Position numbers and translations under genes: made by a program
Shown here: piece by piece, positions 1-48,815 of the stretch
Position numbering within the stretch: the first letter of the stretch is position 1
Layout: the number at the start of each line of letters is the position of its first letter
Notes under the pieces: generated by a model
What the model was told of the DNA's origin: nothing
Databases searched by the model: none
Seen by the model: the letters and a program-made list of their open reading frames with translations, nothing else
Source: Podarcis tiliguerta
Taxonomy: Eukaryota
NCBI GenBank assembly: GCA_965153285.1
Contig: OZ229115.1
Strand: one strand, 5' to 3'
Length of the DNA stretch: 64,000 nt

Positions 1-747
1 GTGATTAATTTCTTGGAAGGGAGGGCTAAGGACTGTGTTATACCCCTAATATCTCGAAGGGATGCCGCCCTAGGAAATCTACAAATGTTTCTGCAGTATC
101 TAGACACGATTTTCTTAGACCCTGCGCATGAAGTAACCACAGCAAGGCAGTTGTTGAGAATGAGACAAGGAAAAGACACTGTGGGAGTTTATTGGTCCAA
201 CTTTAGTTTGCTGGTGCAGAAATTAAAATGGGATCTGAATTCCCCAACAGTTGCAGCCCTTTTTAGGGAAGGACTGAATAATGAGATTTTAGACCAATTG
301 GCCCAAATGCCAGAACCTAGTTCCTTGGACTCTCTGGTCCGAACGTGCCTGCAATTGAGCCTACGCGTGGAACGGAGGGCTAGTGAAAAGAAGGAACAAT
401 GGCAACCACGGTGGCGGGAAAATAATATTATTGAAAGTACAGAGAGCAGAGCGGGCAATATGCCAGGACGAGAGCGGCCAGAGCCCATGGAATTAGGAGC
501 AGCCAGACCCCTCCCAGTTACTACCTCTTCCATGGTAAGAGGAAATGCAGGGAGAGGAAGAGACATGAGGCGTTGCTTCGTCTGTGGAAAACCAGGGCAT
601 CTAGCACGACAATGTCGCAATCGTAAAGGATGGGAGTCTCTATCTGGAGCAGACATGGGAGAAGACAATTGCCCAAAGGAACTGCATCAGGGAAACGAAT
701 GTCCCCGGCTGGAAATGGGAGCTTGCAGCCGGGTGGAGAAGCAATAG
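1..747 (+). CDS. gag: Gag, 5'-partial (capsid C-terminal part and CCHC zinc knuckle)
   Basis: Frame is open from base 1, so the GTG is not a real start. Capsid-like RMRQGKDTV...LFREGL, PEPMELG motif, CFVCGKPGHLARQC at 574-615, TAG at 745-747. Confidence 0.93.
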   Translation: MINFLEGRAKDCVIPLISRRDAALGNLQMFLQYLDTIFLDPAHEVTTARQLLRMRQGKDTVGVYWSNFSLLVQKLKWDLNSPTVAALFREGLNNEILDQLAQMPEPSSLDSLVRTCLQLSLRVERRASEKKEQWQPRWRENNIIESTESRAGNMPGRERPEPMELGAARPLPVTTSSMVRGNAGRGRDMRRCFVCGKPGHLARQCRNRKGWESLSGADMGEDNCPKELHQGNECPRLEMGACSRVEKQ

Positions 748-757
748 AAGGCTCTCA
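690..757 (+). promoter_or_regulatory. Programmed -1 ribosomal frameshift: slippery heptamer and pseudoknot
   Basis: G GGA AAC at 690-696 in the gag frame. Stem1 CCCGGCTG 704-711 pairs with CAGCCGGG 726-733. Stem2 TGGGAGCTT 716-724 pairs with AGGCTCTCA 749-757. pol is in the -1 frame. Confidence 0.9.
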
Positions 758-2648
758 CGCAGAACCACCTATCCCAGGACTAACGGTGAAGGTGCAACTA
801 CAACTACCCAATGGACACAGGGTCCAGGTAGAGGCGCTGTTAGACTCAGGAGCGTCAGCAGATTTCATAGACCAGAAATTGGTACAGGAACACAAAATCG
901 CTTTGTTACCTTTGAATTTCCCACTGCGAGTGAAAACAATTGACGGCAGACCGCTACTGTCAGGAGAAGTGACTTATGAGACTCCACCAATGAGAATGGA
1001 TATGGGTCATCACTCAGAGACCAGGGCATTTCATGTGACCAAACTAGCTGGACACCCGATGGTGCTGGGCATGAGTTGGCTCAATCGTCACAATCCGGTG
1101 ATTGCCTGGCATCAAAGGTCTTTGGTTTTTGGTTCAATCTATTGTATGACACATTGTTTGGGGCAAAAGGGAAAAATCTCAGTGGAAGTAATGGGAACAG
1201 AGGTAGAAGGGAAGTTGATGGGGAATGAAAGTGAGATTCCGTCACAATATATTGCTTATCGAGATGTTTTTTGTGAAAAAGAAGCGGATAAACTTCCACC
1301 ACATAGGCCCTATGATTGCAAGATAGATCTAGTCCCTGGGGCACAGTTGCCACCAAGCAAGATATATGCCATGTCGGAAGTAGAATCTGCAGCATTGAGG
1401 GAGTTCCTGCAAAAGAATTTGCAGAGAGGTTTTATTAGAGAGTCCACAGCCTCGGGGGGTGCTCCCGTCTTTTTTGTCAAAAAGAAAGGGGAGGAAGGGG
1501 CACCGAGATTAGTATGTGACTTCAGAATCCTTAACAGCCAAATGAAGCCTCGCGTGTGCCCACTGCCACGTATAGATGACCTCTTAGAGAGAGTAAGGTC
1601 AGCCAAAGTCTTTACCAAGCTTGATCTACGAGGAGCATATAATCTGATAAGGGTCAGAGAAGGGGATGAGTGGAAAACCAGTTTTTGTACTAAGTATGGT
1701 GCATTTGAATTCTTGGTAATGCCTTTTGGCTTGCAAAATGGCTCAGGGGTATTCCAAACCTTCATCAACCACGTCTTAGCAGGTATACTGGATCAGTTCT
1801 GTGTCTCTTATTTAGATGACCTCTTAATATATAGTGAAAGCATGGAGGAACACGTAAAACATGTCACACAGGTGTTAGAAAGATTGAGGACCAACAGGTT
1901 ATATGTGAAGTTAGAGAAGTGTAAGTTCCATACACAAAAGGTGGAGTTCCTGGGATATTGCATTTCCCACAAAGGGGTGCACATGGACCCCAGTAAAGTT
2001 CAGGCAGTGGTGGAATGGGAGGCACCTAAGACTAAGAAAGATCTACAGAGGTTTTTAGGATTTGCTAATTTCTATCGTAAATTCATAGGTAATTACTCCA
2101 AAATCACAACGCCACTGACTGATTGTCTAAGAGGCAAGGGGCCATTCAGATGGTCTGAGGAAGCACAGAAGGCCTTTGATAAACTAAAGGCGGTGTTTGC
2201 TTCAGAAAAATATCTTATGCACCTAGATCCTAGTAAACGTATGAAGGTAGAAACTGATGCCTCTGATAGGGCTATTGGGGCCATTCTGCTGCAACAGGAC
2301 AAGGAAGGGGACTGGAGACCCTGTGCCTTCTACTCTAGAAAATTAAATCAATCAGAACAAAACTACACCATATTTGATAAAGAACTTTTAGCTGTGCATG
2401 CTGCCTTTAAAGTGTGGAGACATTTTTTGGAAGGGGCGTCACATCAGGTGGTGGTACAAACAGATCATAAGAATTTAGAGTATTGGAGAACTGCTAGACA
2501 GCTAAACCAAAGGCAAATTAGGTGGGCGGAGTTTTTTGCTGGGTTTAATTTTAGGATTGAGTATATACCTGGGCATCAAAACGTTCGTGCAGATGCGCTA
2601 TCGCGCAAACCTGAGTATATGGAAGGGGAAGCACCTCCCAAGTTGTGA
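690..2648 (+). CDS. pol: Pol part 1: aspartic protease, reverse transcriptase, RNase H (entered by frameshift)
   Basis: ALLDSGA (protease); LDLRGAYN, MPFGL and YLDD at 1809-1820 (RT); TDAS, KELLA, TDH, ADALSR (RNase H); ends at TGA 2646-2648. Confidence 0.96.
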   Translation, partial: GKRMSPAGNGSLQPGGEAIEGSHAEPPIPGLTVKVQLQLPNGHRVQVEALLDSGASADFIDQKLVQEHKIALLPLNFPLRVKTIDGRPLLSGEVTYETPPMRMDMGHHSETRAFHVTKLAGHPMVLGMSWLNRHNPVIAWHQRSLVFGSIYCMTHCLGQKGKISVEVMGTEVEGKLMGNESEIPSQYIAYRDVFCEKEADKLPPHRPYDCKIDLVPGAQLPPSKIYAMSEVESAALREFLQKNLQRGFIRESTASGGAPVFFVKKKGEEGAPRLVCDFRILNSQMKPRVCPLPRIDDLLERVRSAKVFTKLDLRGAYNLIRVREGDEWKTSFCTKYGAFEFLVMPFGLQNGSGVFQTFINHVLAGILDQFCVSYLDDLLIYSESMEEHVKHVTQVLERLRTNRLYVKLEKCKFHTQKVEFLGYCISHKGVHMDPSKVQAVVEWEAPKTKKDLQRFLGFANFYRKFIGNYSKITTPLTDCLRGKGPFRWSEEAQKAFDKLKAVFASEKYLMHLDPSKRMKVETDASDRAIGAILLQQDKEGDWRPCAFYSRKLNQSEQNYTIFDKELLAVHAAFKVWRHFLEGASHQVVVQTDHKNLEYWRTARQLNQRQIRWAEFFAGFNFRIEYIPGHQNVRADALSRKPEYMEGEAPPKL

Positions 2649-4559
2649 GAAATACTGAGATCGGATCAGTGGGGGTGTGCAGCCGTAGTAGTGGACGGCA
2701 GGGAATTCCAGCGATTGACAGTAACAGATGAGTTTGCACAAAAGAAAATGGAGGAACTGAGAAAAGGTAGAGGGGAAGAGGAAGGTTTCAAAGAAAAAGA
2801 TGGATTGTTGTACAGGAGAGGGGTGCTGTATGTACCTGCAGGTGAATTAAGAGGTAAAGTGTTGAGGCAACATCATGATAACCCGACTGCAGGACATTTT
2901 GGTAGAGAAAAGACTCTGTATCAGATCACACGACAGTTCTGGTGGCCAAAGTTGAGGGAGGAGGTAACGCAATATGTAAGAGGTTGTGAAGTATGTCAAC
3001 GAGCCAAGGCACCCAGAGCAGCTCCCGCAGGGTTGTTGCAACCTATGCCCACGCCGGGAAGGCCTTGGGATGTGGTGTCTATGGATTTTATAACGGATCT
3101 ACCGTCATCCCATAGGCAAACAGTGATCTTTGTGGTGGTTGACATGCTAACCAAGATGGCACATTTCATACCATGTACCAAAATTCCGACCGCACAGGAA
3201 ACTGCAAAGATGTTTTTAGATAATATTTTTAGGTTGCATGGTTTGCCATCACAAATCATTTCAGATAGAGGGGCCCAATTTACATCACAATTTTGGAAGA
3301 GGTTAATGCAGTTACTAGATGTGGAGCTAAGCCTCACGTCGGCGAGACACCCGCAAACCAATGGGGAAGCTGAAAGAACGAATGCAACACTACAACAATA
3401 TCTGAGGTGTTATGCTGGTTATCAGCAGAGCGGGTGGTTAGAGAAGTTGAGTCTAGCAGAGTTTGCGTATAATAATGCAATGCATGTGTCTACGGGCAGA
3501 GCCCCATTTGTGGCAAACTATGGCTTGCACCCAAGGGCATTCCCAGGTCAAGAGGAGCAGTTAGCAGTACCAGCAGCAGAACAAATGATAGAGGAGTTGA
3601 GGTGCATTCATGAGATATTGAAAGAGGATTTGGAAGAAGCTAAAGAGGCTTACAAGAGAGCTGCAGACAGGCACCGGCGAGTTGGGGAAGAAATCCAAGT
3701 AGGGAGCTGGGTATGGCTGTCTACCAAAGGACTACCAATACGAGGGAGGTGTAAAAAGCTAGAACCAAGGAGATTGGGACCTTTCCAAGTAAAGGCTCAA
3801 ATTAACCCAGTCGCTTTCAAGCTTCATTTACCTGAAAATATGAGAATACACCCTGTATTTCATAGATCTTTATTGTCAGTGTTTGTACCAGCACATAAGT
3901 ATCAAATTTCAAGGGAACCACCTCCTTTTCCCACCATGATGGGGGAAGAGGAGGCTGAAGTGGAAGAGATATTAGACTCGAGAATAAGTAGGAGGAAATT
4001 ACAGTATTTGGTTGCATGGAAAGGGTTAGATGAGTCTGAGAACTCATGGGAATCAGCAGAAAAAATTAACGTTCCAGAATTGCAGAGAGAATTTCATAGA
4101 AAATATCCCCACAAGCCAAAACCCCATAACTGGCATCTTCAAGAAATTTTTGAAAAGACAGATAGCGAGGAAGAAGAGTTCAGAGGGTTCGGTCCTTCAG
4201 AAACAGAGGAGAGCGAGGAGGAGGAAGGGGGGCTTAGGGGAGGGGGTGATGTCAGGGAAGAGTTAGAAGTTTTCAGTTTATCAGAGGGAGAAAGCATTCC
4301 CCAAGGGGGGAGGGAGAGCAGTGAATCTAATAGAAGGGAGCAAGAGGAACAACAGGGAGGGACTGGCTGTTCACAGGAAAGGCAAGGGTTAAGTTCTAGC
4401 TCAGATTCGGAGGAGAGGAGATACAGGCCAGCTCTAGCCAGGAGGTTAGAAAAAAGAGCGGGAAAACGAAGGGAGAGGCGCCTTCGCCATTTTGAGGGTG
4501 GCTGGTCATGGAGAAGCAGAGCTCAGAAGGTATCTGAAATAAGTGACTCTGAGGAATAA
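2649..4559 (+). CDS. pol: Pol part 2: integrase, chromodomain and acidic/basic tail; same frame as part 1 after one TGA
   Basis: HHDNPTAGH...CEVC zinc finger; DDE residues in SMDF, SDRG, GEAERTN; LGPF motif; chromodomain about 3951-4109; frame continues directly from 2649. Confidence 0.95.
   Translation, partial: EILRSDQWGCAAVVVDGREFQRLTVTDEFAQKKMEELRKGRGEEEGFKEKDGLLYRRGVLYVPAGELRGKVLRQHHDNPTAGHFGREKTLYQITRQFWWPKLREEVTQYVRGCEVCQRAKAPRAAPAGLLQPMPTPGRPWDVVSMDFITDLPSSHRQTVIFVVVDMLTKMAHFIPCTKIPTAQETAKMFLDNIFRLHGLPSQIISDRGAQFTSQFWKRLMQLLDVELSLTSARHPQTNGEAERTNATLQQYLRCYAGYQQSGWLEKLSLAEFAYNNAMHVSTGRAPFVANYGLHPRAFPGQEEQLAVPAAEQMIEELRCIHEILKEDLEEAKEAYKRAADRHRRVGEEIQVGSWVWLSTKGLPIRGRCKKLEPRRLGPFQVKAQINPVAFKLHLPENMRIHPVFHRSLLSVFVPAHKYQISREPPPFPTMMGEEEAEVEEILDSRISRRKLQYLVAWKGLDESENSWESAEKINVPELQREFHRKYPHKPKPHNWHLQEIFEKTDSEEEEFRGFGPSETEESEEEEGGLRGGGDVREELEVFSLSEGESIPQGGRESSESNRREQEEQQGGTGCSQERQGLSSSSDSEERRYRPALARRLEKRAGKRRERRLRHFEGGWSWRSRAQKVSEISDSEE
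4218..4249 (+). other. Polypurine tract
   Basis: GAGGAGGAAGGGGGGCTTAGGGGAGGGGGTGA directly before the LTR TG. Confidence 0.85.
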
Positions 4560-4669
4560 CATTTAAGAACTGTTTATAAGATTGTTTTGTTAATACACAA
4601 TAAAAAGTTTTATAAAGAACAAGAAGCATTTGTGTGGTGATCTGAAGAGGACAACGACCAGTCCTGACA
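4250..4669 (+). repeat. 3' LTR (420 bp)
   Basis: TGTCAGG...CCTGACA perfect 7-bp inverted termini, follows the PPT, AATAAA at 4599-4604; predicted TSD CAGAG at 4670-4674. Confidence 0.92.
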
Positions 4670-7600
4670 CAGAGATTATGGGAATAAATAATAAGCAGTA
4701 TACTATTTATATTCTGGTGTAATGTTTGTTTCTATGTGTGCATTTTTACCTTTTGTATGCTATTTCAAGGGTGACAATCAGAAGTGGGATGAAAATTTGG
4801 CAAATAAAAATATATGCATGCTATTTCAACAGCAGTGTGTTCAAGTGTGCATCACTGCCAGAGCAAAGCTCTAAATTTTCCATTGTAAATGTATATTGCA
4901 TGGGTCCAAAAGATTCATGTAGCCAACAGTTAAAGATTGCCAATAGCTTTCTTAGTTATTACTAAGAGCGTACTGATTAAACTTAGCTTCTAATAGGAAG
5001 TATCTATATTCATAATGTTTGTTGATATTTATAATAGTAATAATAACTATTCCAACTGAAACATTATTGAAGACTGAATTGAATTAAAGTGAGAAGGAAT
5101 CTAATTTATGTAATCATGATTCATGCTGTTGGTGATTCTGGTAAACTATGGTAACAGTACTCTTCAGAGTGTTCAAGTTTTCATCTGTACAGAATCTAGA
5201 TATGTTTGTGTGCACATGCATGTACTGCTCTCTCTCCCTACCGATCCTCAGTGGAATGAGTATAGGGATAATGAAGCAATGATAATGATAATAGCATCAA
5301 ATCAGTTATACCGGGACTATAAAGTAGTTACGTTATCTAGCATTTTTCGACAAAATGTAATTATTGTGCTTATTACATCACAAAGTAACAAATGTTTTAA
5401 TATTATTTAGATATGCATTAAAGTACGAAGAGGAAAACACAGAGGGTATTAAAGTTAAGCGCAAATAAGTCCCATCTGTTTCAGTGAGAGATAGTTAAAG
5501 ATGTGCTTAATTCTCCCAATGAAATCACCAGGATTACTTAACTTTGGCCCACACTGTGAAAGCTGAGTTCACTCTTCTAAATGATCCGAGTGCATCAACT
5601 CTCAGTCGGGCATAATCACACAGCTGCTTTCTACCCTAGTTATCTAAACAACAGACAATTCCCTATATGCATACATTTAAATAAATTAACATATACAAAT
5701 GGCCGATAGCTGGGTGTGTATTCCTCTCTGGAGAAGTGACAATCTAAACCTGATCTAACAAATGCATTTAAAATAATCTTCCGTATGCTAATTTATTTAT
5801 CAATTTAATTCAATTCAAGTGGTGTTTTCATGAAATAGCATCACTTGTCTTTAATTTGTCTAATTAATTGATTAAAAGCAAGACAGCTAATCAACTAAAA
5901 GCCTTTAATTACTTGACAGCTCTAGTTTAGATGCTCCCTCACCAGCATCCAAAGTGTAGACATGTCTATGAAATCCCCAATTCTATGAGAAATATTAGTC
6001 TTTGGGAGCAAATACTGCATCACTTGTTATATTACTGGTGCAGTAGTATCCAGAATCTGATGTATTATTCATAAAACAGCAACATCTGCACACAACATCT
6101 GATGCTAAAATTTAGAAATGGAACAACAGCACTGATACAGAGACAATCCCTTATGTACAATAGTGTAACAGTGTTCTACCATTCAAATACTAGACATACA
6201 ATGCACATCTCAATGGAGAACAGCTTCATGGCTTTCCTTTTATCTACGGTAAGCGTTAATCAAATCAGGCTACAACTGATACATAGAAGTTAACATATAT
6301 ATCAGAACAGTATGGTCAGATAAAAGTACAATAGCTCAATCTTGAAATTCATCCCCTACACACAGGGTGAACCGTACTCTCCCACTGAGTGTGCATTTCA
6401 AAGGAGGATGCAATCAGCTTCGGCTCCCTGAGTAGTGTGCATGTATGGCATCTATGTTTGCAAACTCACATTAGTCAAATTCACATGTTACATGTTATGT
6501 GTCCACTCTACTTTTGGGGACTACTTTTTCCCACACGAATATGCCAATCTATGAAATTTTCAACATAGTACTCAAGGTCCACAGATACGTATAGGCAGGA
6601 CCAGGGGAAGGTCCTCCTTAGTACCTGTACCAAGGTACTGGAAGTCACCTCAGAAGAGAGGCCCACTTTGCTCCCTCATGAATGGACTTTCCAAACCAAG
6701 CTGAAGCTCATCAGGCCCCGGAGATCTGAATTTGTTTTAAGTAGCTAGGTGTTCCCGTATCACCTCTTTTCCTACCTTAGGCTACAGCTCTCTCCATCAT
6801 TTATTCTGTTATCACCAGGATGGGCACTGCTTTACTTTATGATGACAACAGAGGCAAAGTAGGTGCTGAGCAGTTTCACCTTCTCTCTTTCACCCAATAG
6901 CACAAACTACTTCTCATTTTAGTACTGTTTGTCATACTGTGCTGGAACTAAGGTATTCATCAATTTTCAAAAACATTTGTAGCAGTGCAGGAGAAACTCG
7001 CCTTTTATAGCTAGAATGTTGACATCATTTATTTAAATTATTTTGTCCTTGCTGCCAGTCACCCATACTTACCATAAGTGACATCACCACACTGTCACAT
7101 TTTACTGTGGTGCCATTCTGCTGACACTGTGCAATTTCTGGTGGAGTAAGATTGCCTACAAGACAAAGGCTAAAATAACAAATGCTTACCAGGAAGCAAA
7201 GCCCATTGAATTCAATGGATTGTATGCCTCAACAGACATACATAAGAATGTGCCGTAATACAGGAAGGCCCCAAACAGGATTTTAAAAATCCTGACTATT
7301 CAGAAAGTCTGTTTTGGAGATGATTAGCTTTCACCTTTCCAGAATCACTTTTTAAAATTAAGAATATTCATCTCAGACATAGCATATGTCCATGGCAGAC
7401 TATTCAGATCCCTATTTGCCACATATGTTTAAAAATAACTCAAGTTAATCAATAAAGATCAGGCCACATACTAAAGAAATACAAGCTTTAGGATACAAAA
7501 GCCTATTGATAAAAATATTATTTAGCATCTGTCTGTTATTCATTTTATCTGTAAATGTTTTTCCTATATAACTAGGGAAGTTATCACAGAAAGAGCTCCA

Positions 7601-14698: not shown

Positions 14699-15050
14699 AA
14701 AAGGTAAAGGGACCCCGACCATTAGGTCCAGTCATGACCGACTCTGGAGTTGTGGCGCTCATCTCGCTTTATTGGCTGAGGGAGCCAGCGTACAGCTTCC
14801 AGGTCATATGGCCAGCATGACTAAGCCGCTTCTGGCGAACCAGAGCAGCGCACGGAAATGCCGTTTACCTTCCGCCAGAGCGGTACCTATTTATCTACTT
14901 GCACTCTGATGTGCTTTTGAACTGCTAGGTTGGCAGGAGCAGGGACCGAGCAACAGGAGTTCACCCTGTCACGGGGATTCGAACCGCCGACCTTCTGATG
15001 GGCAAGTCCTAGGCTCTGTGGTTTAACCCACAGTGCCACCCGTGTCCCAC
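14699..15050 (-). mobile_element. Sauria SINE
   Basis: Head GGGACACGGGTGGCACTGTGG, B-box GGTTCGAATCCC, (ACCTTT) tail, 12-bp TSD GAACCAAAGTTA (14687-14698, 15051-15062). Confidence 0.92.
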
Positions 15051-47846: not shown

Positions 47847-48197
47847 AAAAGGTAAAGGTACCCCTGCCCGTACGGGCCAGTCTTGACAGACTCTAGGGTT
47901 GTGCGCTCATCTCAGCCAGCGCTGTCCACAGACACTTCCGGGTCACGTGGCCAGCATGATGAAGCTGCTCCGGCGAACCGGCACCAGAGCAGCACACAGA
48001 AACGCCGCTTACCTTCCTACTATAAAGCGGTACCTATTTATCTACTTGCACTTAAGAGTGCTTTCGAACTGCTAGGTGGGCAGGAGCTGGGACTGAACGA
48101 CGGGAGCTCACCCCGCCGCGGGGATTTGAACCGCCGACCATGCAATCGGCAAGTCCTAGGCGCTGAGGTTTTACCCACAGCGCCACCCGCATCCCTC
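47847..48197 (-). mobile_element. Sauria SINE
   Basis: Typical head, core and tail; TSD ATCCTGAGCTTA (47835-47846, 48198-48209). Confidence 0.92.
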
Positions 48198-48478: not shown

Positions 48479-48815
48479 AAGGTAAAAGTAAAGGGACCCC
48501 TGACCATTAGGTCCAGTCACGAACGACTCTGGGGTTGTGGTGCTCATCTCGCTTTATTGGCCGAGGGAGCCGGCATACAGCCAGCATGACGAAGCCGCTT
48601 CTGGCAGAGCAGTGCACAGAAATGCCGTTTACCTTCCCGCCAGAGAAGTACCTATTTATCTACTTGCACTTTGATGTGTTTTTGAACTGCTAGCTTGACA
48701 GGAGCAGGGACCGAGCAACGGGAGCTCACCCCGTCACGGGGATTCGAACAGTCAACCTTCTGATTGGCAAGTCCTAGGCTCTGTGGTTTAACCCACAGTG
48801 CCACCCGCATCCCTT
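48479..48815 (-). mobile_element. Sauria SINE
   Basis: Close to the 14699 copy; TSD CTCCTTATGAATA (48466-48478, 48816-48828). Confidence 0.92.

Follow-up and report, generated by a model that had tools for sequence, protein, structure and literature searches.

The window, a 64,000-nucleotide stretch of contig OZ229115.1 (assembly GCA_965153285.1) from the wall lizard Podarcis tiliguerta, begins inside a nearly intact Ty3/Gypsy chromovirus, of which it contains the right-hand 4.7 kb on the + strand (positions 1-4669; Table 1). Pfam matches follow the chromovirus domain order, with gag, protease, reverse transcriptase (RT) and RNase H placed ahead of an integrase that ends in a C-terminal chromodomain. 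The open reading frames (ORFs) for RT/RNase H and for the integrase lie in the same frame, and the sole break seen in pol is the in-frame stop at 2646-2648 between them. The copy is young; contigs at least 99% identical to it are present in public runs of several species, and over 366 aligned columns its integrase shares 98% identity with a protein of Podarcis muralis. For the tail region, identity to a protein of P. lilfordi is 94%. The subject of this report is the long integrase tail between the chromodomain and the polypurine tract (PPT), in which the motif lies 24 residues past the Pfam chromodomain as part of a three-part unit of short helix, acidic linker and FRGF. The unit has the build of the motifs by which cellular proteins bind the integrase-binding domain (IBD) of LEDGF/p75 and related TFIIS N-terminal domains (TNDs).

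Table 1. Coordinates of the chromovirus features in the window
Feature	Position	Strand	Basis
gag ORF, truncated by window start	1..747	+	Pfam Retrotrans_gag and zf-CCHC
Protease/reverse transcriptase/RNase H ORF	630..2648	+	Pfam gag-asp_proteas, RVT_1, RT_RNaseH
Integrase ORF: zinc-binding, catalytic core, SH3-like, chromodomain, long disordered tail	2691..4559	+	Pfam Integrase_H2C2, rve, SH3_Tf2-1, Chromo
Chromodomain, folded, with degenerate aromatic cage	3957..4103 (ORF residues 423-471)	+	Pfam Chromo, E=6.7e-13
Short helix WHLQEIFE, anchor Phe at 4149-4151	4131..4154	+	AlphaFold2 helix; Phe near-invariant in 14 tails
Linker KTDSEEEE, acidic, 8 residues, two S/T-x-x-E sites	4155..4178	+	translation
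FxGF core FRGF	4179..4190	+	translation; F, G, F near-invariant across families
Acidic Ser/Thr segment GPSETEESEEEE 3' of FRGF, two S/T-x-x-E sites	4191..4226	+	
Polypurine tract (PPT), 87-90% purine, in-frame reading E/G/R, abuts LTR start	4203..4249	+	purine profile
3' long terminal repeat (LTR) TGTCAGG...CCTGACA	4250..4669	+	read depth, loose ends, terminal inverted repeat

The integrase frame at 4158-4214 encodes TDSEEEEFRGFGPSETEES, followed by EEEE up to 4226. The original prediction, made from the letters of the window, had picked out D-S-E-E-E-E-F-R-G-F-G at 4161-4193, placed it in a disordered segment with CK2-type S-x-x-E sites directly after the integrase chromodomain, and likened it to the acidic [D/E]xExFxGF motifs of LEDGF/p75 partners. 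These descriptive readings hold up. The peptide is present in the raw sequence and in the translation of the integrase ORF, and the Pfam Chromo match lies directly upstream of it. Four S/T-x-x-[DE] sites (TDSE, SEEE, SETE and SEEE) flank the motif, and EEEEFRGF is an exact match to the pattern (E/D)-X-E-X-F-X-G-F quoted for LEDGF/p75 partners (bioRxiv 10.1101/856021). A match of this sort is of limited value by itself: in composition-preserving shuffles of the single tail, F.GF arises in 1.6% and [DE].[DE].F.GF in 0.1%, odds that are weak evidence because the motif was picked by eye. Judged from the sequences, its real support is conservation across relatives rather than single-tail odds.

TND-interacting motifs (TIMs) contain an obligate short helix anchored by F, V, L or I and an acidic linker of 8-16 residues that is rich in E/D/G/S/T and phosphorylated by CK2 (PMC9987994). 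Many use the helix alone; FxGF is essential in every known partner of the LEDGF/HRP2 TND, where it has a unique role (PMC9987994). A conserved Phe is found in the upstream helix of such motifs (PMC10854676). The window tail has all three parts, the helix WHLQEIFE, the linker KTDSEEEE and the core FRGF with both Phe residues and the Gly. An AlphaFold2 (AF2) run on a 14-row alignment (fragment window:3936-4556) predicts the chromodomain confidently, with a predicted local distance difference test score (pLDDT) of 86-94, and places a helix exactly at W66-E73 of the fragment (pLDDT about 55-73), so that the Phe anchor is predicted to be helical; disorder is predicted after it, with pLDDT below 55 from residue 74 to the tail end. 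No PDB sequence matched the 40-residue tail at E up to 10; a negative of this kind is what a short biased peptide would be expected to give, and it does not count against the reading.

Conservation was assessed in two steps. A first scan, of 203 related proteins retrieved in two database searches, found acidic F.GF only in the tails of the nearest relatives. The set of these was raised to 18 by further cluster members and two more protein searches, made with tail regions, which added Podarcis proteins only. All 18 tails carry F-x(8-10)-F-x-G-F, once or twice. They comprise three Podarcis families (28-44% whole-alignment identity to the window) and two further proteins, P0136 and P0003. Family A, the window's own, has three members with one unit each, and family B has five members with two tandem units wherever the tail is complete. 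P0136 likewise has two units, and P0003 has the second unit only. Family C, with eight members in five subfamilies, has one unit with a Ser/Thr-rich, non-acidic linker. We note that family C tails share further blocks, SYWWD..PE, and FEH followed by an acidic E.EAEEI.VDE.

Within these tails the pattern of constancy and change follows the three-part unit. An intact first unit begins 24-25 residues past the chromodomain, and the linker is 8-9 residues long in every unit. Across two alignments with 13-14 tails, four columns are at least 90% conserved: the helix Phe and the core residues F, G and F. Before the PPT, the other columns at that level are an invariant Glu six residues after the motif in one alignment and a linker Thr in the other. 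The x position of FxGF is variable (R, I, E, V, L, Q or H), and in family A it is the site that differs between species, being R in the window and I in further copies and other species (4183 G>T). The five subfamilies of family C, 30-45% apart in the tail, all retain the unit. Families A and B, P0136 and P0003 all have acidic linkers; positions -4/-2 relative to the core are acidic in the window (EEEE) and in unit 1 of both family B and P0136, and are S/T in the other units. AF2 of the family B integrase P0207, at a mean pLDDT of 49.8, gives low-confidence helices before both units. The check that had been proposed at the outset, whether related families conserve FxGF better than its flanks, was thus run and passed, and on these comparisons we regard the motif as real and conserved.

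The unit is also specific to this group of integrases. It is absent from about 120 other chromovirus tails, and in 182,655 residues of other chromovirus proteins there are three such strings, none of them in a native post-chromodomain tail; one lies in gag, one in an RT motif, and one in the host-derived part of a chimeric model. In a FastTree tree of 184 integrases, built from the core through the chromodomain with the tail excluded, the 16 motif-bearing rows form a single branch with support of 100. Sister to this clade is a Rhineura floridana sequence, the integrase portion of a chimeric gene model that lacks the native tail, and the next outgroups have short basic Pro/Gly/Arg tails without the unit. 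As to such models, P0010 (Rhineura floridana) and P0036 (Podarcis muralis), named TM9SF2 isoform X2 and vomeronasal type-2 receptor 26-like, respectively, are chimeras of Gypsy integrase and host exons, and thus annotation artefacts. Many models of Ranitomeya imitator are likewise mixtures of Gypsy and host Pfam domains.

The motif-bearing clade has also lost the aromatic cage of its chromodomain. The window has A-W-L at the cage positions, versus Y-W-Y in HP1, and so does not have the group I (HP1-like) cage, Y/F/W - W - Y/F. The aromatic-W-aromatic arrangement is kept in about 75% of 201 relatives, including the nearest outgroups, in which the cage is intact. The three positions read A/T-W-L in family A and x-W-E in family B, P0136 and P0003; family C has lost all three residues. 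Chromodomains that have lost cage residues 1 and 3 make up group II, which is reported to have been detected only in plants (PMC3605345). The lizard elements resemble chromoviruses with group I or II chromodomains in having a Ty3/Gypsy integrase with a C-terminal chromodomain, and resemble group II in the cage loss; they differ from the plant group II elements in that a vertebrate clade has lost the cage and has a new tail motif as well. The association of cage loss with the motif is suggestive at the sequence level and is not a replicated correlation.

We reasoned that these features are best accounted for by a docking motif. The reading that the lacertid-lizard chromovirus tail carries a conserved short linear motif of LEDGF/HRP2-type TIM build, acting by docking and tethering, is one that we consider about evenly poised between right and wrong. 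The integrase tail would dock on the IBD/TND of the H3K36me readers LEDGF/p75 or HRP2, probably more tightly after phosphorylation by CK2, for which S/T-x-x-[DE] sites are what is seen. Docking would tether the intasome to transcribed chromatin, and the tether would replace or override the H3K9me-directed targeting that a cage-less chromodomain could no longer give. The broader proposal, held a shade more tentatively, is that this lineage switched its targeting from heterochromatin read by the chromodomain to transcribed gene bodies, by way of an acquired TIM mimic that some families duplicated. With respect to mimicry of a host TIM, which had been put forward for the single window tail, the conserved architecture, the upstream helix Phe and the linker favor it; the partner, the phosphorylation and the effect on targeting are the inferred part of the proposal. 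One insertion tells nothing about insertion bias.

Several observations weigh against this docking interpretation. First, the unit is not intact in every copy: unit 1 of the family B protein P0211 has decayed to FEEF, P0003 lacks the first unit, and one contig of run X1 joins 4124 to 4238, skipping 113 bases (4125-4237), and is a variant copy without the entire helix-linker-FxGF unit. Second, no purifying selection is visible at shallow depth, because 7 of 9 codon changes (10 base differences) among four species over 350 nt are non-synonymous. Third, the named members all come from one genus (P. muralis and P. lilfordi), and cage loss and motif gain count as one evolutionary event because the clade is a single branch. 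Finally, the family C linker TPTLSAST is non-acidic unless phosphorylated, and the chromodomain is still predicted with confidence to fold, such that targeting by the chromodomain may still be possible.

The strongest alternative, although an unlikely one, is that the unit is real and selected and serves a partner other than LEDGF/HRP2. This could be IWS1, Elongin A, MED26, PPP1R10 or TFIIS, bound via the helix, or an unrelated acidic-aromatic reader; or the unit could act in nuclear import, intasome assembly or integrase regulation. Conservation demonstrates constraint, not the identity of a partner. Acidic-aromatic motifs are promiscuous, which favors a partner outside LEDGF/HRP2. Family C, with its non-acidic linker and extra conserved tail blocks, also sits more easily with this alternative, as does the reliance of many TIMs on the helix alone (PMC9987994). 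Against it are the unique role of FxGF in recognition by the LEDGF/HRP2 TND and its essential place in all known partners of these proteins (PMC9987994), together with the spacing from helix Phe to FxGF, which is 9-10 residues in every unit and matches a two-pocket geometry.

It is considerably less probable that the motif is shared by descent and functionless, the tail being junk read-through between chromodomain and PPT, and the TIM likeness coincidental. In its favor, the chance of the string in a single tail is 0.1-1.6%, many motifs are open to a reader, all motif members fall within one clade, and the shallow variation is mostly non-synonymous. Simple descent is nonetheless hard to reconcile with families that differ at most tail positions and yet retain the helix Phe, the F, G and F and their spacing. 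The unit has also been duplicated, with both copies kept, in two lineages, and it persists in five family C subfamilies at 30-45% tail difference.

A constraint on the nucleic acid, in which the purine-rich region before the PPT serves plus-strand priming or RNA structure and the acidic GAR codons are a by-product, is very improbable: the 70-90% purine content of 4145-4249, the reading of the PPT itself as E/G/R, and the conservation across families of the PPT/LTR-start peptide EGG..G.DV[RT]E (conserved as peptide because the nucleotides at the PPT and LTR start are constrained) speak for it, but the purine run is broken by the F and G codons (57% purine at 4175-4204), F, G and F stay constant amid a variable linker and x position, and family C tails have no evident PPT-encoded peptide in the part examined. 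PPT-linked constraint does not explain the conservation because the distance from unit to PPT varies between families, with the first unit at a fixed distance from the chromodomain and 13 to about 50 residues from the PPT (about 50 in family B). We therefore rejected it as the main cause on the variable PPT distance, the broken purine run, and the variable linker and x position.

The 3' border of the element was mapped with contigs of four public runs (four organisms) aligned to 3900-4700. Contig depth rises 10-100 fold at 4250 and drops at ∼4670 in the four runs, and heterogeneous loose contig ends lie at 4250 and at 4667-4671; these depth steps and loose ends at both borders identify 4250-4669 as the 3' LTR. 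The window includes this LTR only, and the 5' LTR lies outside it. The integrase ORF crosses the PPT and extends 103 codons beyond the start of the 3' LTR (4250-4559), and in having a coding region that runs into the 3' LTR the element resembles the CRM clade (PMC3605345). The LTR-encoded part of the integrase has a basic cluster, RRLEKRAGKRRERRLRHF, which may be a nuclear localization signal; the corresponding stretch of P0136 and of P0003 is basic too. In each of the four runs, the LTR has 10-100 times the summed contig depth of the internal region. Depth does not measure copy number, but with this caution the excess suggests numerous solo LTRs or elements that share the LTR, and the ratios suggest internal copies in the tens, with LTRs far more numerous. 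Elsewhere in the window, ten ORFs were tested of the eleven of at least 110 amino acids in 4700-64000, and no Pfam match was found. A 177-nt direct repeat is present in three copies (14872-15048, 48019-48195 and 48637-48813; 81-100% identity), and is probably a short interspersed repeat.

Returning to docking on LEDGF/HRP2, the closest parallels are the IBD-binding motifs (IBMs)/TIMs of cellular proteins, including KMT2A/MLL1, JPO2, PogZ, IWS1, CDC7-ASK, MED1, DPF3a and fly Jil-1. They share with the lizard unit a disordered peptide, a Phe helix, an acidic linker of CK2 type and FxGF, and some multivalent partners have tandem copies, as do family B and P0136. Recognition of FxGF by the IBD is conserved from fly to human; fly dP75 binds a Jil-1 FYGF peptide at 0.8 µM, and F/G/F substitutions abolish binding. 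The lizard unit differs from these in that it lies in the integrase tail of an LTR retrotransposon rather than in a host transcription factor, and that the family C linker is Ser/Thr. We consider it probable, on its sequence features, that the unit is a mimic of this host motif and a variant of integrase-tail tethering.

Tethering by an integrase tail has precedents. The C-terminal tail of murine leukemia virus (MLV) integrase binds the BET ET domain, and the targeting domain of Ty5 binds Sir4. The Ty1 integrase C-terminus binds AC40 and sets target choice (PMC7459421). In each of these, as proposed for the lizard element, a short peptide near the integrase C-terminus recognizes a chromatin or transcription protein of the host; they differ in partner and in class of chromatin, and none is a TND/TIM interaction. 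HIV-1 integrase and LEDGF/p75 resemble the lizard system in the proposed outcome, docking on the IBD with a bias to transcribed gene bodies (PMC9987994). HIV-1 differs in that its contact, around residue D366 of the IBD, is made by a pre-formed, structured face of the catalytic-core dimer and not by a disordered IBM (PMC10854676). The lizard element would instead occupy the IBD pockets used by cellular partners, which would make it a true motif mimic, convergent with the lentiviruses. A full-text literature search (TND/TIM, LEDGF, retrotransposon, transposon, chromovirus, integrase) found no such motif described in a retrotransposon integrase.

The choice of integration site governs both the harm that retroelements do and their success. 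If the docking interpretation is true, the LEDGF/HRP2 hub would have been hijacked on at least two occasions and by structurally different routes, and the lizard clade would be a natural case of a chromovirus replacing the function of its chromodomain. The TND-TIM network would then be a target of mimicry by mobile elements, and the interpretation would predict where young insertions are located in wall-lizard genomes.

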